DNA of 64,000 nt from Calcarisporiella thermophila CBS 279.70 (taxonomy: Eukaryota > Fungi > Calcarisporiellomycota), in contig NW_027192191.1 of NCBI RefSeq assembly GCF_041956535.1, forward strand, positions 721,328 to 785,327, written 5' to 3'. The notes below the pieces were generated by a model. It worked only from the letters and a program-made list of their open reading frames with translations, had not been told where the DNA came from and searched no databases. The position numbers were made by a program, and so were the translations under genes. Numbering within the stretch: position 1 is the first letter of the stretch; each line of letters opens with the position of its first letter. Below are positions 21,385-44,908 of the stretch, piece after piece.

Positions 21385-24300
21385 ATGTCTTCAGAATGCA
21401 ATTCTTCAACCAGCAATGAACAATATATAACCACTTGGACGTCAACAACGCCTCTATTTGAGCTACCTGGAATTCAGAATCGTGTTACCATCGAAAAAGT
21501 TTATTTAAATGGATTGCATGCACTAAAGCGCTTTGAGATCAAGAACACATCACCTTTTCGCATACTCGTGCGCCTGCGTTCCAACCTGGGAACGCAGGTT
21601 GCATTTCAGCCTAATAACGAAAACCTCCCCGATCCTGATGCATTTTTTCAAAACACTTCATCCGCAGGGGCTGGGCTTGTGTCATTTCCTCAGACTCCCA
21701 GTGACGAAGCGTCTGAGCCCCTAGCCACATTTCCCTCTACTCCTCCCTCTCCTACTCTCTCCACGAGTATGGACGATGTACCCAATACTTTGCCTGAACA
21801 CTTCTTCAGTATTGCTACCAACACGGTAGCAGCCATGGCCGCGGGAATAAGTGACCGGTTTGGCCACCAGGGCTATCAGTTCAACCAGCTGTTTAACTAT
21901 GTTAATTATGTGGACGAAATTGATATACCCCCTTTTCAATCGAAGAAAGTTATTCTTGCTTTCCTCCCGGACTCTTCACGCGAACGAAGCAGTCGTCGTA
22001 CAGCAAATCGAGTAGATAGGTCAGAAGAATCAAGTGATAGGTCAAGTTTGTTTTCATCGGCCGCCCCTGCCGACTCGGAGGAGACGCATGATATATTTGA
22101 AGTCAACGGGTTGCTTCTGTTTTACGGGTATATCATGGACGCGACCCAACGTTTTCAGTACAATCATTCTTCAGCAACCTCAGGTCAGCGCACGGGATCA
22201 ACTTCTGTCGACCCATCTCCCCCTACCTCCAACTCACTCTCACGGCGTAACTCCATATCCCAGGAGCGACCACCTCGCTTACAGTTTTCTGAGTCGGAGG
22301 AAGGTTCTGCGACATCTGAGCCTCGGAGGGAGGATGAGCCCGGCTATGGAGCACGCTCTGACTACCAACTGACGGTAAAATTCCGGTCCTCTGTATGCCG
22401 TAGCGTCCTCTGGACCGATGTCGGTGAAACAGGCATCAATTTCGATGACTGTGTCGTGGGAGGTATCTACTTCAAAGATTTTACGGTGTGGAATCGCTCC
22501 GAAATTGAGCTTTACTGGCTGCTAAACACGGTGGACCTCACTAACACTCGGCATGATGACTGGCTACAATTCATCGACTACGATACTGGTGAACCGTTGG
22601 ACGCAAAGCCCATTCCAAGTTATTCACATCGTCGAATCCGCATTACCTTCCGACCAAAAGAAACCGGCGAGTTCAATTACGATCTTCAGGTGGAAAATGC
22701 CAATGATGCGAGCAATATTGAGCTGGTGCGGATCAACGCGTCGGTGCGCACTGTCCTCCGCGAAGAATCACTAGTGGTGAGTAGTGGAAACGTGCTGGAT
22801 TTTGGCGATTGCTGTGCAGGTGTGGTGGCAAAACAGCAGATAGTGCTCAAGAATGTAAGCGACATGCCATTGGAAATCCGATTCTCGGCCGAAAATGCAG
22901 AGGTTGCGTTCGACCTTGGTTCAGCTCCCGAATTACCCTCTGATCTCTCCTCTTCCCACCAAGATACCGTAAGCTCAGGATTGCACACGCCCACTCTATC
23001 TCTAAGTACCATGCTAAGCACAACTGACCGGTCTACCCCTGGAAGCGGTGCAAGTTCCCCACGCCCCTCCTCTCCAATATCTTCTTTGAATACACCCCAT
23101 TCGCTGGGACTCGAGATGGTGAGCGGGCGATCGGCGAGCAGCTCGGTGGCCGAAAATGGGGAAGGAGAGGCGGACGGCGAATCCATTCCTGAAAGTTTAA
23201 AACTCAATCCGAATGCCTCCCCGTCTTTGGCGAGCAATAGACCATGGGGTAGTTCAGTTGAAGCCGGCACCAGTCGCTCAGCGTCCCGGGCTGAAGGATT
23301 ACAGATCGATGAACTCTTAATAAAACCCGGTTCGGAGCGAACTGTAATCGTGTCCTATCGGCCTGAAAAGGATGCGTCCGCAACCGACTTCCGTGCAGGT
23401 CAGCTGGTGCGGCGAAACTTCCGCATTATTCTGGACTACGCCACTTATTCTGGCTCATCGGCACCTAGCTATCAGCGAGAAAAGAAGATAATCAAATGTA
23501 AGGCAAGAAGTTGCACCTCATTTGTTGAAGTTGTACCAAAAGAAGTCAACTTCGGCGATACGGACGTTGGCACACTTAAATCGCTCCCGATTGACATTGT
23601 GAACCGTTCCGAGCTAACGGCCCGTGTTGAAATTCGTTTCACCTCAAAAGTGCTCAATTGTTATCAAGGAGAACTGGTTATACCACCTTTACAGTCGATT
23701 GAAGTGAAACTGGACCTGTACCCGCGTAAGGTCAACCCTGATTACCGCAAGGAGCTTACCCTCGTTAACTTGCAAAACCGAGATAACGACCAGATCATCG
23801 AAGTACGCAGCAACAATATTGATAAGAAACGCGTTACATTTCACTCGCTCTTCTACCGCATTCTCACACCGACGGGATCGAATTATATTGATTTCGGATC
23901 GATTATTCTTAATTCACCTGCAGTGCGCACTTTTGTCATTGACAACATTAGCCAGGCGCCGTTAAAGCTAGAGCTCTCATCTTCGCTTCCCGAGGAGGTT
24001 GTAGTATATCGGAAGCGAAAACTTGCTGACGCTGCAGGTCAATTAGAAATCGACCAGGGCAACCTACTCTTTCGTCAGCGGTTGCTAGACTCCATCAGCG
24101 AGAAACGGGTGAGCGCTTCAAATTTTGTTGATAAAGAATCTATCGCTAGTGCATCCAATGGCTCTCCACTGGCTTCAACAAGTCTGAAGAATGGTCCAAG
24201 CAGCTCCCCGAGAAAACTAAGCTCTCCACGCCACACTATTGGCACCAATGCAGATAAGGGCATCGTTTCTCGGACAGAATATCTTGATTTGGCGACATCC

Positions 24301-27300
24301 GCTCATACCTCTGGCCCGAATGGCTCGGCTCGTAACAAGTCGCGTCCTCCCTCGCGTGTCCCTGGTATATCGAAACCATCGCGGCCCGAGTACTTCCTCA
24401 AGAAGCTTGTGCAGAATAAACTTGCCCTTCAAGCAAAAACTGAAATGAACCGAGATGGAGAAGCGGTCCAGGAGCTCTCACCTGATCCTAGGGGACTATC
24501 AATGAAGACTCCACTTGCATCCTCAGCGTCCACTAGAAGCCCTGCCTCGACATCGACAAAATTACGTCCCACTAATAGATTTGCAAGGGCAGGAAGTATA
24601 TCTGCTGCCAATCCGAAATCATTCTCTAGATTGAATTTTAACGACTGGGTCCACAACGCCGACATTGCCACCGATGCTCTGATCGATGCACTGGAAGCCA
24701 ATTGCATCACCTCTCCGCCCCTTTTCGCAAACTCGTCAGCCGAAGAGAAATATGTGCAGTACCAAGTCGCCTTAAGGCAGGCATTGAACAAAGCGTACGA
24801 AAATGGGATTCTTGTCCCTAGCACAGAGGTGGTGATACCGCCTCTTTCGCAAGAGGAAATCATTCTCATCTATACTGCCTCCGGCCAGGACAAGGCACAC
24901 GTACAAGGCATTCCAAAAAGGCAGAACGCAAGGATATTTCTTCGGCTTGTTAGTTTCGACCGGAATGTCGAGCATGAAGGGCAATTCGACTCTTTGTTAC
25001 AGACAGACATTACTCAAATCCCAGTGCGAGAGTTGATGCTCCGGTCCTCACTGTGTCGTTCTATCATGGATATCGGGCAAAAGAACATCAATTTCGGTGT
25101 GCTCGACAAGGGCGAGAAACGTACCAAAACCATTGTTATTCAGAATCGTAGTGAGGTGCCACTTCTCTACGCTATTCGTAAATCAGGTTCAATTGCATCG
25201 GGCGGTATATCCATTGGGTCGGGTGCATATGGTGTAGTACGAGGGTACGGTAAGAAGGAGGTCGAGTTCTCCTTCAGGCCAAGTCTTGCCGGTCCTGTGC
25301 ACGAGCGTCTTGTTATTGAGAATATTTACGATCGGGAGACTAGCCAGATAGTTTCGGTCAAATCCCAGGTCCGAAAACAATGCCACTTTTTCATCAAGTC
25401 ACTTGAGCTCGATTTTGGTCCGTGTGCCGTTGAACAACCGTCCCGCCGCAATCAGCAACTTGTCATCACCAACACGGACCGCCAGGCACGGACTATTGTG
25501 GTGCGTGTTGATCCGGAGGAGTTGAAGTTTGAACGGTGCTTCGGAGAATTGGATTTCACCTTAATGGAGTCACAAGAGTCGCATATAGAGCTAAGCAAAG
25601 AGGCAGAAGAGGAGATAGAGAGCATCGAGCAGAAACTGAAAATTGCTAAGCGCAAAGGCCGCGAGGACAAAGTGAAGAAGCTGCTGAAAAAACTAGAGAA
25701 ACTAAAGCGAGGTGTATCCGCAGAAGAAGAGGCCGAAGATCCAAATGCCCCAATCGCTAGCGAGTCCTCGAATGACACCCATGCAATGACGGGGAATACT
25801 GTGGGGTCCACCTCTGCTGAGACAAGAAAGGGCCAGTCTCCTGAGCTTCCTCCTGAGTCACCGGCTCACCCAGATCCATCGATGACGCCCGCGCAGCCCC
25901 CCGCATCCGCCGCAGCATCTTACAAAATCAGAAAGACGCCCAACGAGCTCACATTTGTCTTAGAGCCACGCGCCACTCGCACCGTTACAATCTGTTTCCG
26001 CTCTCGGCTTCGCCTTGATAATATCAATGACAACTCCCCCACTTTGCGTGAGATAATCAAGGGCCGGATTTTTGTTCATGAGCATAAGAATACGGATGCA
26101 ATTAAGAAGGTGGTTTTCCAGGCGATCGTTTGCTATGACCATGAGACCTATAAAAAGGCCCTTGTTGAGGCCATGGGCCCAGCAGGCTATGACTCCTTAC
26201 CCCAATTGGATGTCGCAACCGATTCATCAAAGCTCCGCCCTGATTCATCAATGAACAAAGTAGAGGAATCACAAGAGCAAATCAGGACCGAGACTGTTGC
26301 CGTCTTGCCTCCAGACCTTGATGTTGGAAGGTTGGGAGCCGAACAAAAGGGAAACTATTATCTTCGGCTGTGCAATCAAACAGATGACAAACTCGACTTC
26401 GAGATCATACCCTCTTCATCCGAATTTTTCCTCTTTAGCTCTCTTGTTGGTTCCCTTGCTCCCCGCGAGGTGCGTCGACTCGATTTCAGCGTTTTATGCT
26501 CCGAAATTGGGCGACACACGCAGCACCTGCTCATACGGGATCTAACCCATGGCACTTCTAATGCGACCTTCCGTTTTCACTGCTTGATCCATCGCGTGCA
26601 ATATTTGAACTTCCCTTCGCTCAATACAAATGGAGAGCTGGACCTTGGCCTTTGTTATGTAGATCCCGGGCGCAAATACTCTCAGGTAACCCCGTTACTT
26701 GTGGAAAATGTATCAGACGAGGATATCTATATCACCTGTCAGAGCAATCTGTCGCAGCAGGTGTGTATCTTTCTGGATGAAACTGGTAAACGGGGGCAAG
26801 TGGTGGATACTTTGCTCAAACGTAAAAGTGTAATGACTGTGTGGGTTGCATTACGTCCGAATTTGCTGGGAGCATATCTCACAGGAACGTCCACAAGCTC
26901 CTCCAATTCGACCTCTACTTCTTCAGGGCTGGCTGCATCCACTCCAACCTTTAACGACAAAGGTGCATCATCGAGCAGCGAGTGTCGCAAACTGGTCGGC
27001 GGAATCAAGTTCTCGGTGTCCGTGGCAGAATCCAGTCTGAAAGCAGCCGATCAACTCCCCTCCTCTTCTATTGGCGAGGAAGAGCACGTCCTCATGACCA
27101 CACATACAGTTAAATTTACCTCACTAATAGGTCAATCTGTCATGTCCGTTTCGACGACAATGATTGATTTGGGAGTGGTATCACGGCTCGGACAAACAGT
27201 ATACAACGTGTTCACAGTATATAACATGTCTTCGCGATTACCCCTTGAGTATGATGTGGAATGCCCAAGTGGAGCCATCTTAGTGGATCGAAAGGATGGA

Positions 27301-30300
27301 GTCTTGCGTGGACGAGATGTTGGGAAGGTGAGAGAGGATGGTAGCCGTCACTCTCCTCTATTCTCGCCACCCTCCGAAAGTGGTCCTGAAGGAGGTGGAG
27401 AGCTCGAAGATTTTGCGGAGGATGTCACCCAAAGCTCCGCATTAGTGAGCTTTCGCTTCAACTGCACACGCTGGGGCCTCTTCCAGGACAAAATTGTGGT
27501 TTCTAACCGCAACAACCGTGACCAGGAGTTTGAGATTGTGGTGATGTTAATGGCTGATCCGGGCATTTTAAATCACATACCCGATTCGATGCGATGGGAT
27601 ATCAGTGATCTTACCCTAACCAAACCCACCAGCGGAGGTACCCCACTGCACGAGATTTGCACAACAAGGGACGAAGGACTGTGTCATTCTGGACGACGAA
27701 ATCTTCCTGAATTGTGCTGGGATAATATACCTCTTCACTTGGAAAAAGCTTCGGTATCCCCTCCCCAGTCAGGGCTGCGGGTGATTTTGGATGAAGCCGA
27801 AATCCCCTCTAATGGTACTCAGGTGGTGCTTGCTGGGTTTGGTGGGGAAATATCAACCATACCTGAGCAATGTATTGAACTCACCAATCTTAGCAAAGAA
27901 TTGGCTCAGATCGTTCCCTATTGCAACGTGGACGTCGGTGTCTCTTGGGAAGAGGGGGCTCCAGTGGAAAATAATGTGATTGGTGACGATGAGAATCCCC
28001 TGACGTCCTTCGGATTCCGTCGGCTGGGTTCATCAATGGACCTGCTACCCAACCAAAAAGTTCATCTCCAAATTGGCTGTCCACTGCCACCCAACCTTAC
28101 TAGTGCCAATATTGAGCAACTACAGAAAGGCGACAAAATATACTGGACTGGAATTCTCGCCCTCTATGACACCATTTCGCGAACGGCTATAAAAGTGTTT
28201 CGGCTCTCAGCCCTACTTGGACAACCGCGAGCCGAACTTGTTAGCAAGAAAATCGAACTTGGCAAGGTTGGGCATTTCAATGGCTGGAGAAACGTAGACT
28301 TTTCATTCAATGTGCGCAATTTGTCTGCGCTGCCGTTCATTTATAACTTGAGGCTGCCGAGCGAAGTGATGGTTCGGAACTCGATTTTGGAGAGTTGGCA
28401 CTCCGTTGCAAATCAGTGGATTATTCCGCCATGGGAAGAACAGACAGTGTACGCTACCTTGCAGCCGCGCAAACTTTCTGATCCCACTCAGCCTGGAGAA
28501 CGAACGCAAATACTGAGTGTGGTTAACGCCCGCGACCCATCTCAAGTGATGGACTTGAAAATTAGACTTCGGCTAACAGTGTTCGAACTAAGTTTCGCCA
28601 ATCTTGAAGAGAATGGTGAGCTGCACCTTCCCCCGCTACAACACCCGCTCCTAGCATCAGCCGTGCCTTGTGACGCCTGGTTTACGGTGATGAACACGAC
28701 TGACGATGATGTTAGGTTTGATATAGGGGCAGAGCTCAACCCAGAAGTGTCAGATTATATCAAGATGGAAGTCCTTTCCCGCTTTTCTAATACCCCACTG
28801 AAAGGTGGCGTCTCGCTCAGCCCCCATGGCAAAATCGAGGTGAGGCTTCGCGTCCACCCAAGGGAAGATTCACGCTTGCCGAAGAATGCGTTCCATCTCA
28901 CTAACCCAGCGGGGATTTATTTTGGCAAGCTTCGTGTATCCACGCGACAATCACCCGCAGATAAACCGTTTTCAGAGCTCCCAGGAGATTCGGAGACACG
29001 ACCTAGCGATATTGTTGATATTCCAATACGGGGAGTACTTATCGAAGGCCCTGTGTTTAGTATCTCGCGGGATCATATCGAATTCCGCAGTGCATGGCTT
29101 GGTCTATCTGACAGTGAACAGAGCGAAGGTGAGGACGAGGGAGGGAAGCATCCAACTAAGAGAAGTCCTCTCATGCCCTCGATGTTGGATCACAAGCAAA
29201 TTGAAACGGTTGTCATTACGAACCACAATCCCAAATTACCGCTTGAGTTTTCAGTGAGCCTGAACGGTCCGATGGAGACCCCCCTCGATGAGTTAATCGA
29301 TATCTCTCCCCTCTCGGAGGAAGGTCGTGGTTTCGTGGAGCCGGGTGGAAAGCTAACACTCTCTGTGCAATTTCTCGACCCCCAGATTGTCATTTCAGAC
29401 AGCATTAAAGTGTGCATCCAGGATATCAATTCCCTCTCTGGACTCAAGCAAGTGTTAACTGTCAACGTCAGCGCCCGCAAGACGACTAACAAGCGCATCG
29501 ATTATGGGCTGGATGGAGGAGATGGCACACAATCTGAGCATGCTAGGCGGAGGTTACACCACGAGGGTGTCAGTACCGCCATGTCTCCTCGCGTTGCCTA
29601 CGAGTGTCCATGTATCACGCTACGTGGATGCAAGCGAATATCGGATGGAGGCTTTGGTGGACGATATGAGCTCGATCTTGGCCAGCAGGATTTGGGGGCA
29701 ACTAATATTGTTAAGAAGTTGACGTTGGAAAACACTTCTAATGAACCTATCTCCTACCGCGTTAAGACTGTGAATGATGCGGATCGCTCATGGCTCAGCA
29801 TCAGCCCTGCCGAGGGTACTCTGGATCCTCCGAGTGAAGCCGCAGACTCCGAGAACGAGGTCGCATGCAACGATGGATACTCGTCGACTCAAACGATTAC
29901 CATTAGCTTCTCTGCCGCAACACGAAACATTTACTCCACCTATTTGCTCATCGAGAGTGTGGATAATCCGGCTGACACTAAGACGGTGCGAGTGACCATG
30001 GAGGTGGTCGCGAGGCAAAATATTCGCCGAGGGATTGCATCGGGCGGATCGGCGGAGAGTAATAGAGTTTTCGATGTGTACGTGAATGGGGTTGACTCGG
30101 AGAAGACGTGCATCGAGATGCTGAGTCTATACTATGGTCACGAATATACCACTCGCAGCATGGTTATCCATAATTATGAACCCATGCCGATGGAGTTTGC
30201 CCTCAAGACGAACTTGTCTCATGACGACCCTACGGAGATCCTGTTTTCCACCTCGCGCACCTCGGCCAAACTATTCAAGACCCTAACAGTCGATGGGTAT

Positions 30301-31718
30301 TCAAGCGCGCGTGTCTACATTCGCTTCAGGCCGTTCCCCTCTGCCGATATTAGGGCAATGCTTGCCAATGGAGAAGCGCGTGATATCGACGCTGTGGAAG
30401 AGAAACGCCTTGAAATATATGTTAATTGTCGGCTCGTAAAGGATTTTCAACAGATTGTATTCCTAAAAGCAGAGTGTCGAATGCCAGCAATGGAAGTGTA
30501 TTGGCTCGAGACGGAGGCCTTTGTTGGTGTGTAATCTTTTTCGGAAGCATTTCTACACCAAACTTCAACCCACTAATATTTACATAACACTTTTCACCTA
30601 GGTACAATTTCAAGATTATTGACTACTGACTCCGAGGAAAGTGACTGGGAGATCCAGTTTTCAGAAAAAGAGCGTCCGCTCATCGTCTGCAATCTCCTGG
30701 ACATACCACTTGAATATGAGATCGTCAATGATACGAGGTATTTCTTAATGGAGCCAACCGATGCCGATAAGACGGTCGAGTCTTTTGGCCGTCGAGAAGT
30801 CAAAGTTTCTCCAAATATAAAAGCTCTATTGAAGAATGCGGATTCTCTATGGAGGGTGAGTTAAACACATGCTTTCATTCATTTAATTTTTATTTTGCTA
30901 ATATAGCTTCGGTCGACTTTTATAATACAGGAAAAATATATCCAAGAAAATGTGACCATCTATAATCGTAAACGACCCCTTGAAAACTATTGGCTACCGC
31001 TTCGTATCAGCTTCGGACAGACTTCCCATTTCCAGATGTCATCCGGCTATAAGAGCTCATACGCATTCAGTATGCTCGAGAATCATGTTGTGTACTTTTT
31101 GGGAGATTTCAACATGAATGCGACCCTATTGCTGACCCAAGAAGACGAGGTACGATAACCCCCTGGACCGAATATATTCAACTATTTCCTGACATAACTA
31201 TCCTTATTTTACGCTGTAGATGACCCAAAAGAAAATTGCTGATTTGGAGTTTCAGTACCATTTCATCGTCGATCAATTGGTCTACTATGGAACCATTAAG
31301 ACTGGCGAGAACTTTATCCAGCTGGCTTGCCTTCTCTTTGGGTATTTATTGCATTAAATCAATTTATATTTAGTCTTGATTCTCAACTGGCTATTTTATT
31401 ATTTAGCTCGGCACTTGGACACGACGTGTTCAAGGAATATGCCCCTTCCTATCTTAAAGCTACCGATACAGACCAGCGTATCTGGCCCCCTGTACTGGCT
31501 AAATGGGTATGTTGAACATTCCGGCACTCCTGCCCCCATGAAAAATACTAACCACAGTTTGGAATTCCTAGGTTTCGCTATTACATTATTTCATTAGCTT
31601 TTTCCCATACGAGAACCCAATTCTTCATACTCTGAAGCGATTGCATGCATCCTTGATTCTGGTTGATGGAGGTTCTGGGAGTGGAGGAAGTTCTCAGCGG
31701 AAGAAGCCTCAAGGGTGA
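21385..31718 (+). CDS. Giant (~3,300 aa) protein with many ASH/PapD-like Ig-fold repeats; function unknown
   Basis: Exon 1 is about 9.1 kb (21385-30526) and is followed by 5 short exons ending at TGA 31716-31718. The motif [LI][DN]FG..x(n)..[IL]xNxS recurs: INFDDC..VWNRS, LDFGDC..LKNVS, VNFGDTDVG..IVNRS, INFGVLDKG..IQNRS, LDLGQQDLG..LENTS. Confidence 0.85.
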
Positions 31719-40840: not shown

Positions 40841-42529
40841 TCAATTATACCAGGAACCGCGCGCTGATCCATCGGCGGTCAACCCAACCTCTATGCCTTT
40901 TTGGATGAATTCATCCTGTGCATCATGGAGCGTCCAATCTCCCTGTCTATCGCCTCTGAGATCTCGCAGCTCTTTTATAGATTGCACCCACTGTAAAATA
41001 TCCTCCTTCGAATAGACCGTCCATTTGGCTTCCTCTAGTAACTGCCGTAATCGGGCAGGATGAATTGCCGCTCCACAATACGTGTTTCTCCAGCAGATCG
41101 TAAGAAGCAGCCAGCCAAAGATTTCTTCTTGGAAGGGAAGAGGCAGATCCCACTGCTCGACCCATAAGGGAATCTCAAAAGCAGCCCAGTTCTCCGCACT
41201 CCAACGGTGAAAATGATCGAAGAGGTCAAGGTGCGTGCGAGTAGAGCCAAACCGTCTCAGTGGCTTAATATTTCCTAATGCAGCAAGCAACAAATAACGT
41301 ATCCCTGTCGCCAAAAGATTTCCCCAGGCAATCGCGGTAGCTCCTGTAGATTCCGTTGCAGCCCATAATGAAATAGCAAGTCCAGCAGCACCAAAAGTCC
41401 AACCAACAATGACGATCAACCAAGCCAAAGGTAAGCGGACACGCAAAGCTCTGATGCCTGGGGACAATGCAGCATGATTACAATGCCACCATCGACTAAT
41501 CTTGCCAGTCGCCTTCGATCGTGCAATAGCCAAGCCAGTAGCACCTCGAGTTGGTATAAGCAGGTTATTTGTCGATTGCAACACGACAGCCGCTTTCCTG
41601 TTAGGTTGAGCTGTGTATAAGAATTCCGACAGATCAGCCACCAACAAGGGTGTGGGCAGCGTCTCCAAAGCAACCCAACAGGCAAGCCCGACTCCGAAGG
41701 AAAGCAGCACAGAACCAACCCCAACGGCCCATAAAGGACCACTACTAATAATTAGTGCTAATATCCAGACTATGATGCCTTGAAGACAAGCCCAAAAGGC
41801 AACCCAACTTCCACCGATGAAAACATGGACTGCGGCAGCGGATATGACAGTTTTCTTACTCCTGGCTTTTCCAGAACGCAGTTGCATCCACCACCTCTCG
41901 TGGCTATATGTCCAAGAGTCTAGAGAAGACGAACGTACAGACCTGGATGGATCGGCCAATGGCCTCACAGTCCATTTTTCTCCGTCCCAAGTCACACTTT
42001 CCCAAGTTAATTCAGCTTCCGAATGGGCCATGCCAAGATCCCAGTATAGGCGGGCGCCAGCCATGTCGATAGCATAGGCAGGACAGTTTGAAGCAAGAAG
42101 GTGTATCTGAGCCAATTCAGCACCAATATTCCCAAGCACTCCGAGGCCAACCCTCAACTGCCATCCACCTCCAAGTGTAGCTCCACAAAGAAGCGTTCCA
42201 ATATACGCGTTTAGCACATTGTAACTTGCTCTTTTCACAAAGCTATTTCCTAGTGCTCCTACGATAGGAGCAATCCAGCTTGCACGGTCAATAATCGGGC
42301 CAGGAACATTACCATCAGCTGCCAGAGACATTTTGGGTATCTGGGCAGCAAACAACGTTTGAATCGCTACTTGCCACCAATTTGTTAAGCCAATAAAGGA
42401 AGAAACTGGAAAACTATCATGAGAAGGATGACTCGAAATGTTAGGACTGGTAGCATAATGTGTTATGAATCTAATTAGTTCAGAGAATTGTGCAGCATCC
42501 ATTGCTATTTCCTTGCGCACCGACCCCAT
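40841..42529 (-). CDS. Uncharacterised intronless multi-pass membrane protein
   Basis: Uninterrupted ORF of 596 aa from ATG 42631; more likely starts are 42529 or 42502. It has at least 4-5 hydrophobic helices in the middle and C-terminal half. I recognise no family. Confidence 0.75.
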   Translation of the reverse strand: MGSVRKEIAMDAAQFSELIRFITHYATSPNISSHPSHDSFPVSSFIGLTNWWQVAIQTLFAAQIPKMSLAADGNVPGPIIDRASWIAPIVGALGNSFVKRASYNVLNAYIGTLLCGATLGGGWQLRVGLGVLGNIGAELAQIHLLASNCPAYAIDMAGARLYWDLGMAHSEAELTWESVTWDGEKWTVRPLADPSRSVRSSSLDSWTYSHERWWMQLRSGKARSKKTVISAAAVHVFIGGSWVAFWACLQGIIVWILALIISSGPLWAVGVGSVLLSFGVGLACWVALETLPTPLLVADLSEFLYTAQPNRKAAVVLQSTNNLLIPTRGATGLAIARSKATGKISRWWHCNHAALSPGIRALRVRLPLAWLIVIVGWTFGAAGLAISLWAATESTGATAIAWGNLLATGIRYLLLAALGNIKPLRRFGSTRTHLDLFDHFHRWSAENWAAFEIPLWVEQWDLPLPFQEEIFGWLLLTICWRNTYCGAAIHPARLRQLLEEAKWTVYSKEDILQWVQSIKELRDLRGDRQGDWTLHDAQDEFIQKGIEVGLTADGSARGSWYN

Positions 42530-43876
42530 AACCAGCGTCCTTTTCTTTTTTTCTGCACTCGAATTGCGGGAGCGAGAAAACAAGGACAATAATAAACGCC
42601 AACGCAAATTGAAACATGATGGGCTGCTCATATAATTTCTTCAATTTTGCAACTGAATAATAGGAAAAGAACGAATGTCGCTTTCTTTTATTCTTACATA
42701 AAGCACGTGTTACGTACAGTCTCTCAGGAGAATAGAGTTTGTAAAATTTTAACAAGTGAGATAAGGAGGGACGAACTTGAATAGCCACTGGGCTTGTAGA
42801 ATATTCTCGGGTACTATATCAATACTGATCACACCAAGCCCAAGCAAACCACAAGTACATCTGCATGTGTCTTCTTTTGCCGAGCCTTAACTTTAAGGTT
42901 GGTTCCGTGAGGAAATTTTTCTAGATTGAAATTCAGGTATATATATTTTATCCAATGCCTAAAGATGATAGAGCTAGATATGCGATACGTTTATATGTAC
43001 AAAGGACCACAAAAATTCATATATAGGAGATATAAATATTTATTTTAGCAACCTCCAAGGAGTAAATATCCTTACTAAACATATAGTTCTCATTCCTTTT
43101 TTATTGTAGCACCCAGCTCAGGGTAATAACTAAAGTTAGGTTAAACTTCGATTGAACGGTTGATACATTTTAGTTTTAATTTCACTCCTACATCTTTCAG
43201 GTATAGATATAGTATTTTATCCAAGATATGTTTCTGCTACTTCAAATATAAGCGAAACTTGTTTAAATGTAATAAGTTTTTAATTGTAGCCTAATGTGAA
43301 GAGTTTTCCATTAACGTGTAATAGCAGGAATAATAGAAGTTTAAAAGAAGTGCCAATTTAAATTTCGTACATCAAAATTATACTTGGCGAAAATGAAAAA
43401 AAAAAGCGAAAAAGAAAACAACGCATTCCTTTGGCCACAGGCGATGGAATGTTTTATAATAAAAGCCAATAAATTGTTGTGCTTGAGATGATTTTTCAAG
43501 TACTTAGTGCCAATTGACCACATCCTTGGCTTGTTTACTTTCTTGATGCCTTTGTTTTCATTTATATACGGTATTTTTAATAGCTTCTATGCGTTTCTAA
43601 CCGTCCTCTTACGCTTGTGATGACCTACTGCCAGCATATTCCTGGATTAGCTGCTTCTCCTTTGCATTGAGTTCCGATCAAGTCCAAGAAGTAAAGGAAT
43701 AGGAATTTAGATCCCCAACTATGCTGATGCAAAACTCTTCTTCAATCTGTGGCGCGACGAAAAACATATCTCAGCCAATGTAAATTAAGGTTAGCTTGAA
43801 ATAATCAAAAATGTTTCCATCTCTTCGTCTTCTCCTGAACGAAACTTACTCCATTCTCGCACACGTAGATATCCAC

Positions 43877-44908
43877 ATGTACTTTGAAAATGCTTATGCG
43901 CTTCTTATAGGGACAGGTGCTAATGATAATGGCGATGTTGACCCTGAATATGAAAGCTTTATAGAGGATGCTAAATGGCTTAAAGATATATTAACAGATG
44001 AATCGCGTTGTGCTTATCCTCCCGGCAATGTGCATCTCATTTTGGGTAGGGAAGCAACAAGGAAAAATATAATTCTTGGATTAGAGAGACTGGCTTCAAC
44101 GTCAAATGAGGATTCGACGGTCCTAGTATTATTTTCGGGGCATGGGTTCCGGAAAGGTTCCAATCAAACTTATTTAGTTCCCACTGGAATGCGCTCCAAT
44201 GACAATCCCGAACAGTGTGCGATTTCTGGTGATGTATTCTATAATCTCATTAAATCCATACCAAGTAAAAAAATATTACTTCTACTGAATTGCTGCTATG
44301 CCGGTGGAGTTATTCCTAATTTGCTACGATCTGAAGGTGAACTAGCTCTTGGTAATACACCACTTACTGAAGGGCAAATTGCCCAGCTCAGGGATGGTAA
44401 GGGCTTTGCTGTTTTGTCGTCCTCGCATCCAAATGAAATAACTAAAACGGGTAGACCCGGCGGAGAGCATGGCTCTCTATCGTCAAAATCATACAGTGTT
44501 TTTGTGATGGGTGTCATTGCGGCCTTATCTGGATGGAATCAGAAGTCTGACGAGAACTGTGTCCGTGTCTTGGATCTGATTACTGCATGCAAAGAATATG
44601 TGAAGGAAAAATCGAAGGGAAAGCAGAACCCTTATGCGGATTTCCATCACCTCGATAATTTTCCTGTTTCTTACTTCAGTGATTACAAAGAAAAACGCAA
44701 GAGAACAAGGTGGTTCCTTGGTATGGACAGAGACTTCATTATCGATAGTGATAGTGATAGTGATAACAGTGAAGAAGAGGATATGCCTATGACCACCTCG
44801 CATGTTTCTCAGGTGGCTAGAACCAGAAACGCCCATGCGACAAATGGCGGCGTTGTCATATCTGGAAACTTTAATATGAATAACGGAAGAGTCCACTTCG
44901 GACGATAA
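43877..44908 (+). CDS. Caspase-family (peptidase C14) protease, bacterial-type, with a C-terminal low-complexity N/G motif
   Basis: Intronless; an alternative ATG is at 43811. Motifs are YALLIG, DAKWLKDILTD..RCAYP, EATRKNIILGLERL, VLFSGHG (His 44141), LLLLNCCYAGG (Cys 44294), AVLSSS..E, YSVF and KQNP. Confidence 0.9.
   Translation: MYFENAYALLIGTGANDNGDVDPEYESFIEDAKWLKDILTDESRCAYPPGNVHLILGREATRKNIILGLERLASTSNEDSTVLVLFSGHGFRKGSNQTYLVPTGMRSNDNPEQCAISGDVFYNLIKSIPSKKILLLLNCCYAGGVIPNLLRSEGELALGNTPLTEGQIAQLRDGKGFAVLSSSHPNEITKTGRPGGEHGSLSSKSYSVFVMGVIAALSGWNQKSDENCVRVLDLITACKEYVKEKSKGKQNPYADFHHLDNFPVSYFSDYKEKRKRTRWFLGMDRDFIIDSDSDSDNSEEEDMPMTTSHVSQVARTRNAHATNGGVVISGNFNMNNGRVHFGR

Follow-up and report, generated by a model that had tools for sequence, protein, structure and literature searches.

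We examined a 64,000-nucleotide stretch (here called the window) of the genome of the fungus Calcarisporiella thermophila CBS 279.70, which carries a caspase-like gene on its forward strand at positions 43877..44908; the features of this gene given below all lie on the same strand. The likely coding sequence, whose span includes the stop codon, encodes 343 amino acids from Met23 of a longer open frame (43811-44908; 365 amino acids, protein P0001) that begins at an earlier ATG in the list of open reading frames (ORFs). We consider 43877 the likelier start because relatives align from Met23; residues 1 to 19 of the 365-residue frame, whose numbering is used throughout, are of low confidence in the structure model. 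The exact protein is present in the protein database. It consists of a Peptidase_C14 (caspase-fold) domain (residues 29-281; 43895..44653), an acidic linker rich in Asp, Glu, and Ser (residues 305-324; 44723..44782), which was recognized in the alignment of relatives and is disordered in the structure model, and a C-terminal Gly/Asn-rich motif (residues 333-364; 44807..44902) that resembles a motif in the first exons of NOD-like receptor (NLR) genes with an NB-ARC domain. This tail is a putative coupling motif, amyloid-like or similar to effector-associated domains (EADs).

The protease domain scored 46.1 bits against PF00656 (Peptidase_C14; cut-off, 21.4 bits; E = 6.2e-12). In an AlphaFold2 model built from 13 sequences, the core has pLDDT (predicted local distance difference test) values of 80-97, and disorder extends from residue 292 to the C-terminal end. 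Foldseek matched the model to MALT1 paracaspase, plant and yeast metacaspases, caspase-9, and legumain, all at a probability of 1.00 and 10-17% identity, with E values of 1e-10 to 1e-8 for MALT1, the metacaspases, and caspase-9. The catalytic residues are His111, within SGHG (codon at 44141..44143), and Cys162, the second Cys of NCC (44294..44296); they align with the GHG and Cys139, respectively, of Arabidopsis metacaspase 4, and among 13 aligned relatives the His is invariant and the Cys nearly so. The active site reads Asn-Cys-Cys-Tyr-Ala-Gly, whereas prokaryotic relatives have Asp-Cys-Cys. Judging from these alignments and the model, the product is a clan CD (caspase-fold) cysteine protease with an intact dyad, predicted to be catalytically competent. 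It shares the clan CD fold and His-Cys dyad with fungal type I metacaspases (Mca1/Yca1), and yeast and Candida metacaspase structures were among the Foldseek matches, but it has neither the prodomain nor the DSCHSG motif of those proteins, the best solved metacaspase was a marginal match (E = 0.046), and canonical metacaspase loci are present elsewhere in the genome (contigs 11 and 24, each split into two matches). We are confident that it is a C14 protease of bacterial type and not a metacaspase.

An earlier annotation made from the sequence alone (the first-pass annotation) had described an intronless C14 caspase gene with an intact SGHG/NCC dyad and neither a Pro/Gln-rich prodomain nor DSCHSG, and had given a motif string for its family. 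These points held: the ORF is uninterrupted and carries Peptidase_C14, the dyad aligns with the metacaspase 4 pair, the domain begins about 6 residues after Met23, and the motif string agrees with the family consensus in the alignment of relatives. The same annotation had set the intronless gene against intron-rich neighbors; that contrast is not distinctive, as adjacent ORFs of 596 and 3049 amino acids are likewise uninterrupted. Residues 292-299 (44684-44707), which separate the domain from the acidic linker, include a Lys/Arg-rich patch that resembles a classical nuclear localization signal and is not conserved in the paralog described next.

The assembly (28.2 Mb in 116 contigs) contains three copies of the caspase gene on two contigs. 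The window copy and paralog P0002 (C1:901032-902057; 45% identity to the window protein) lie on the same 1,703,125-bp contig, P0002 among genes that we take, from their ORF translations, to encode an Aurora-type kinase, a Rad3/XPD-type helicase, and a lactone oxidase. The third copy (contig 39; L008:2129-3178, equivalent to G000:C39:19129-20178) is interrupted by a single in-frame TGA after residue 188 and is probably a pseudogene; it adjoins a Tc1/mariner-like DDE transposase fragment and stretches that read N.

A word-based protein search returned P0002 at 45% identity and proteins of Jimgerdemannia flammicorona at 41-44%, followed by unnamed proteins from metagenomes (about 33-35%). An exhaustive HMMER search gave 6216 matches at E ≤ 0.001, the nearest being further proteins of Jimgerdemannia and Endogone sp. 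and a few unnamed ones. Taxon names were known for part of these matches; the eukaryotic relatives bearing names come only from Calcarisporiella, Jimgerdemannia, and Endogone, that is, outside the host, from Endogonales. Jimgerdemannia has at least 8 copies. A scan of GTDB species genomes with a five-sequence alignment as query found 516 loci with relatives in several bacterial phyla and one archaeal family, the best of them in filamentous Cyanobacteriota, Anaerolineae and other Chloroflexota, and Methanothrix.

The Endogonales copies that we examined are intronless and sit among eukaryotic genes (encoding HSP90, dynactin, the YVC1 channel, and a giant GTPase); HSP90, dynactin, and YVC1 flank the Endogone copies. 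Among the latter is a divergent one, P0091 (L132:8730-9767, contig RBNK01000382.1), located between the genes for HSP90, mitochondrial L31, and dynactin, which resembles bacterial members in its Asp-Cys-Cys and in the segment that follows the domain; this copy may preserve the ancestral state or derive from a second acquisition. One Jimgerdemannia paralog (L129:1-7476, contig RBNJ01000814.1) adjoins a gene for a 2558-amino-acid GTPase of the GVIN/URGCP type, a family associated with immunity in animals.

A bacterial fragment mis-joined into a fungal assembly would also present a protein of bacterial affinity, which is the sole point in favor of a contaminant or assembly artifact. That explanation is not tenable given the assembly context: the 1.7-Mb contig carries eukaryotic genes on either side of the caspase gene, three diverged paralogs occupy two contigs, best identity to any prokaryotic protein is 33-43%, and homologs sit among eukaryotic genes in two further fungal assemblies. 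Composition is also that of the host (GC content, 42% for the gene, with 37% at third codon positions, and 44% for the window).

In a maximum-likelihood tree of 133 domain sequences (LG+C20 model, quick search, with supports from the Shimodaira-Hasegawa-like approximate likelihood ratio test, SH-aLRT), 15 fungal or fungal-like sequences formed one clade with a support of 99 on a stem of 1.12 changes per site. P0091 was its weakly supported sister, and a single branch separates all 16 eukaryotic or eukaryote-like sequences from the rest. When the tree was rooted on distant prokaryotic C14 groups (Anaerolineae and an Acidobacteriota sequence), three successive nodes, supported at 93, 91, and 89, placed the fungal clade within the prokaryotic radiation. 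These values fall short of the 95 mark, and the root is an assumption based on prokaryotic outgroups; both points count against a bacterial origin.

We nevertheless consider an ancient bacterium-to-fungus transfer, taken by itself, quite probable. The rival is vertical descent: the family would be an old C14 lineage of eukaryotes or fungi that survives only in Calcarisporiella and Endogonales and was lost elsewhere, its prokaryotic relatives reflecting deep common ancestry or transfers in the reverse direction. The long stem, the deep divergence of paralogs within the clade (36-47% identity), the fully host-like composition, and the modest nesting supports are all compatible with such a history. 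It would require many independent losses among eukaryotes, however, and it fits poorly with a prokaryotic diversity that is far larger (Chloroflexota, Cyanobacteriota, Acidobacteriota, Pseudomonadota, and Methanotrichaceae), with more distant outgroups that are also prokaryotic, with the bacterial-type features retained by P0091, and with the intronless state of every fungal copy examined; we regard it as improbable.

The first-pass annotation had associated the family with Chloroflexi and cyanobacteria, where the GTDB scan indeed placed its best relatives, and had proposed horizontal acquisition of a bacterial cell-death or defense protease. The nesting of the fungal clade among prokaryotes, with the supports and root assumption given above, and its restriction, among named eukaryotes, to Calcarisporiella, Jimgerdemannia, and Endogone agree with transfer from a bacterium; a recent event specific to this genome does not fit, as the acquisition is ancient and common to a fungal lineage. 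In a published phylogenomic tree, Calcarisporiella is sister to the other Mucoromycotina and the Endogonales clade is the next branch (10.1101/2022.06.24.497490). We infer the direction and date of transfer from these data: an ancestor of the early Mucoromycotina lineages (Calcarisporiella and Endogonales) would have acquired a caspase gene from a bacterium, and the gene would then have lost the compositional traces of its origin and multiplied (three copies here and at least eight in Jimgerdemannia). In the simplest history, the gene was transferred once, near the base of Mucoromycotina, then expanded in Calcarisporiella and Endogonales and was lost from later lineages; a second transfer (giving rise to P0091) or fungus-to-fungus transfer may also have contributed.

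The layout is the same throughout the fungal clade: the protease domain is followed by an Asp/Glu-rich linker and then by a tail of 30-45 residues, which has a high content of Gly, Asn, Ser, and Thr and ends in aromatic residues. The C. thermophila genome has 14 NB-ARC matches in long open frames, accompanied by TPR_10/12 or ankyrin repeats, and in 11 of these genes the sequence upstream of the P-loop contains a short open frame that starts with Met and carries a related Gly/Asn-rich motif. By a frame compatibility check, GT..AG introns of 64-120 nucleotides can join the motif frame in phase to the NB-ARC exon; the public gene models for two of these NLR genes (P0177 and P0179) begin with the motif at the protein N terminus. 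NLR exons were searched singly, and P0177 and P0179 served as the joined NLR N termini.

We built a profile from the 11 NLR motif exons, with no caspase tail included, and ran it on the whole genome in six frames. Below the NLR exons themselves, its matches were, in order, one more NLR (L127; E = 2e-8), a patatin-like phospholipase gene in its first exon (E = 2.3e-4), the P0002 tail (E = 0.0017), another NLR exon (E = 1.8), C8:1087821 (E = 2.5), and the window tail (E = 4.9). We dismissed C8:1087821 as a chance match, its frame not being gene-like. In all, at least 14 NB-ARC+TPR/ANK genes have a Met-started first exon that resembles the caspase tail, as does the one patatin-like gene. Both caspase tails align in register from a common Ser-Gln. 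None of 2000 composition-preserving shuffles of either tail reached the observed score (P0002, 24.5 bits against a shuffle maximum of 10.6; window tail, 14.2 bits against 11.7). In pairwise BLASTP comparisons, the P0002 tail was 50% identical to P0179 over 22 residues (E = 6e-5) and the window tail 46% identical to the L121 NLR exon over 24 residues (E = 7e-5); the two tails are 44% identical to each other. Taking the profile, shuffle, and pairwise scores together, we judge the similarity between tail and NLR motif, as read from sequence, to be real for the family and probable for the window copy.

Two loci with the motif deserve mention in their own right. The patatin-like gene (L128; G000:C16:694700-697200) has its motif exon at about 227-343 and patatin exons at 615-914 and 981-1184, with the Pfam Patatin match on the later exons; its motif is N-terminal, not C-terminal as in the caspases. 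A tandem cluster (L125/L126; G000:C2:53000-71499) holds three NB-ARC+ankyrin NLR genes, each following a motif exon of a distinct subtype, one of which lacks a start Met and may be decaying.

Several results weigh against a coupling role for the tail. The E value of 4.9 for the window tail means that its case leans on homology to the P0002 tail and on the pairwise and shuffle tests. The tail of the interrupted third paralog scored 0 bits against the NLR-only profile, and a genome search with a profile of the three Calcarisporiella caspase tails found no partner beyond the tails themselves. (That profile also hit C1:1374906 with E = 0.28, in antisense orientation within a large gene of no relation; we rejected this match as chance.) The motifs are short and compositionally biased. 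No NLR gene adjoins any of the three caspase loci; P0002 and P0182, the closest pair, are about 10 kb apart, and the N terminus of the NLR P0182 has no match to the motif. No motif exon was found within 0.8 kb upstream of the Jimgerdemannia NLR L131, where a conserved linker is present, and with that single Jimgerdemannia NLR upstream region, covariation of tails and NLR motifs across species could not be shown. Genome profile searches for gasdermin (PF04598) and EACC1 (PF19953), which would be candidate substrates, gave no match above the cut-off, and neither did one for NACHT (PF05729). The Pfam HET-s, sigma, PP, and EAD10 models had no match in the fungal tails or NLR N termini at E values up to 10. 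A complex prediction for the P0002 tail and the P0179 N terminus scored 0.01, a result to which we give no weight either way.

It is conceivable that the tail is a disordered, low-complexity appendage, that its likeness to the NLR motif is convergence of Gly/Asn/Ser-rich sequence, and that the caspase works by itself, for instance in stress or development, as metacaspases do. The weak genome-wide score of the window tail, the null score of the third paralog's tail, the lack of adjacent NLR genes, and the predicted disorder of the tail are what such an appendage would show. Convergence accounts less well for a profile that, in 28 Mb of six-frame sequence, ranks the P0002 tail right after NLR and patatin matches; for the failure of all composition-preserving shuffles of both tails; for alignments that begin in register at the same Ser-Gln; and for a layout of domain, acidic linker, and motif that is kept in all fungal-clade members. 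Bacterial relatives, moreover, show an unmistakable pairing of the tail with the N terminus of a neighboring NACHT gene. We consider the low-complexity explanation unlikely, though it is the strongest of the alternatives.

The nearest nonfungal relatives of the window protein (33-43% identity) are caspases of Cyanobacteriota, Chloroflexota, and Methanothrix that are coupled to signal transduction ATPases with numerous domains (STAND) or NLRs. They have the same length and layout, including a short Gly/Asn-rich tail that is mirrored at the N terminus of a STAND NTPase. At bacterial loci such as L030, L058, and L017, the caspase tail resembles the N terminus of the adjoining large gene, which encodes an EAD10+NACHT+HEAT, NACHT+HEAT, or NACHT+FGE-sulfatase protein; at L030, the tail-matching stretch falls inside the Pfam EAD10 domain, and the tail of one bacterial caspase (P0010) touches EAD10 weakly (19 bits, below the cut-off). 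Caspase-NB-ARC fusions also occur among the prokaryotic relatives (L035 and L048). At two Anaerolineales contigs (L044 and L063), the element common to the caspase tail and the neighboring P-loop gene is a Cys4 zinc ribbon rather than a Gly/Asn motif; within a single caspase family, one coupling element can take the place of another. EADs have been proposed as homotypic couplers of effectors and core NTPases (Kaur et al. 2020, PMC7159879), and bacterial amyloid signaling (BASS) motifs are common to NLR N termini and effector C termini, including those of a CHAT protease (Dyrka et al., 10.1101/2020.01.06.895854). The fungal system differs from the prokaryotic one in that its partner genes are dispersed rather than adjacent or fused, its tail has no Pfam EAD10 match, and its receptors are NB-ARC+TPR/ANK rather than NACHT+HEAT proteins.

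Our preferred reading is that the window gene encodes a bacterially derived caspase that is coupled to NLRs through its tail motif, to which we assign a probability of roughly 0.55. The fungal protein would have kept the prokaryotic layout of protease domain, acidic linker, and short Gly/Asn-rich tail. A receptor of the NB-ARC+TPR or NB-ARC+ANK type, with the motif at its extreme N terminus, would oligomerize when triggered; the clustered receptor motifs would then template or bind the caspase tail through a homotypic interface, and the protease molecules so gathered would be activated by proximity, as are caspase-9, caspase-1, and MALT1. The active caspase would cut substrates, leading to cell death or defense, and the motif-bearing patatin-like lipase, likely a second effector on the same wiring, would act in parallel. 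Motif-motif binding, activation, and biological role are all parts that we infer; the occurrence of the motif in NLR genes lends the cell-death or defense role indirect backing, as far as sequence likeness goes. A fuller version, in which Calcarisporiella and probably Endogonales have an inflammasome-like pathway of bacterial derivation, one prion-like or homotypic motif family linking at least 14 NB-ARC receptors to the caspase (two intact copies) and the patatin-like lipase, is more tentative, and we would put it somewhat short of even odds.

The arrangement proposed here resembles the NLR amyloid signaling systems (HET-S/NWD2; HRAM, PP, sigma, and PUASM; BASS1-10), in which a motif of about 25-35 residues, rich in Gly, Asn, Gln, and Ser, is found at the extreme N terminus of an NLR and at the C terminus of a separate effector. 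As in Agaricomycetes (PMC9815663), there are many NLR-side copies of the motif and few effector-side copies, and these are unlinked, unlike amyloid signaling in Ascomycota and bacteria, where effector and NLR are usually adjacent. The effector also differs, being a caspase-fold protease and not a HeLo, HeLo-like, SesA/B, or PNP_UDP protein. The Agaricomycetes survey and two reviews describe NLR motif signaling only in Ascomycota, Basidiomycota, and bacteria, with HeLo-type, SesA/B, or PNP_UDP effectors (PMC9815663, PMC10197012, PMC12258605). In a limited literature search, we found no report of a motif-bearing caspase-fold effector in fungi, nor of such signaling in zygomycete lineages.

Animal apoptosomes and inflammasomes are built around NLR-to-caspase signaling, whose evolutionary origins are under debate. 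The proposed pathway is analogous in outline to Apaf-1/caspase-9 and NLR-ASC-caspase-1, each combining a STAND receptor, a homotypic adaptor element, and activation by proximity; this is analogy only, as the adaptor would be a short, beta-prone motif and not a CARD or PYD six-helix bundle, and there is no sequence kinship beyond the caspase fold. To our knowledge, the NLR-controlled executioners of fungi are pore formers and lipases, and we know of caspase-related CHAT domains in fungi only within NLRs or as gasdermin partners. If the fuller version of our reading is correct, this would be the first coupling of a receptor to a caspase by such a motif in fungi and the first NLR motif signaling in a zygomycete lineage. 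It would also be a direct evolutionary bridge from bacterial STAND-caspase systems to eukaryotic NLR-caspase signaling. A free caspase-fold protease of plainly bacterial descent that has its short motif in common with an entire NLR repertoire, in a terrestrial fungus from an early branch, would show that a complete logic of receptor, adaptor motif, and caspase can pass from bacteria to eukaryotes and stay modular. A motif of about 30 residues, a protease of about 340 residues, and a culturable thermophilic host make a small, tractable test system, which could address whether motif templating activates the caspase. Should only the transfer prove true, there would still be good support for a bacterial immune gene of ancient date having been domesticated and expanded in Mucoromycotina.

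The caspase gene has a neighbor that suggests a different partner: window positions 40841-42631 on the reverse strand encode a 596-amino-acid, Trp/Gly-rich, multi-pass membrane protein in an uninterrupted frame with no Pfam family. The two genes stand head to head across a 1.2-kb spacer and could form a cassette of a protease and the membrane effector it activates, like the bacterial caspase-EACC1 or protease-gasdermin modules. There is bacterial precedent in the EACC1 pore, which is opened by its caspase (10.1101/2025.11.14.688446), and the best NCBIfam model for the window protein is the EACC1-associated caspase type (NF047832), a licensed executioner in a conflict system. The score against that model, however, was 67.5 bits, about half of the cut-off of 140; EACC1 and gasdermin have no match in the genome; and the 596-amino-acid protein is an unrelated membrane protein, whose nearest neighbors in feature space are ordinary fungal hypothetical proteins. 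It is single copy and not beside the other two caspase paralogs, and the Jimgerdemannia and Endogone caspase copies have different neighbors. The three host caspase loci and the Endogonales loci examined gave no evidence of a conserved caspase-membrane protein pair, and we think such a cassette very improbable.

Elsewhere, the window encodes an MFS transporter, a PAQR/HlyIII protein, a C2H2 zinc-finger protein, and a SABATH-like methyltransferase. The uninterrupted 3049-amino-acid ORF mentioned above lies on the forward strand at 21385-30534 and has ASH, HYDIN/CFAP65-type Ig, and Cep192-like domains. We know of no flagella in C. thermophila; this domain set is usually linked to cilia and centrosomes.

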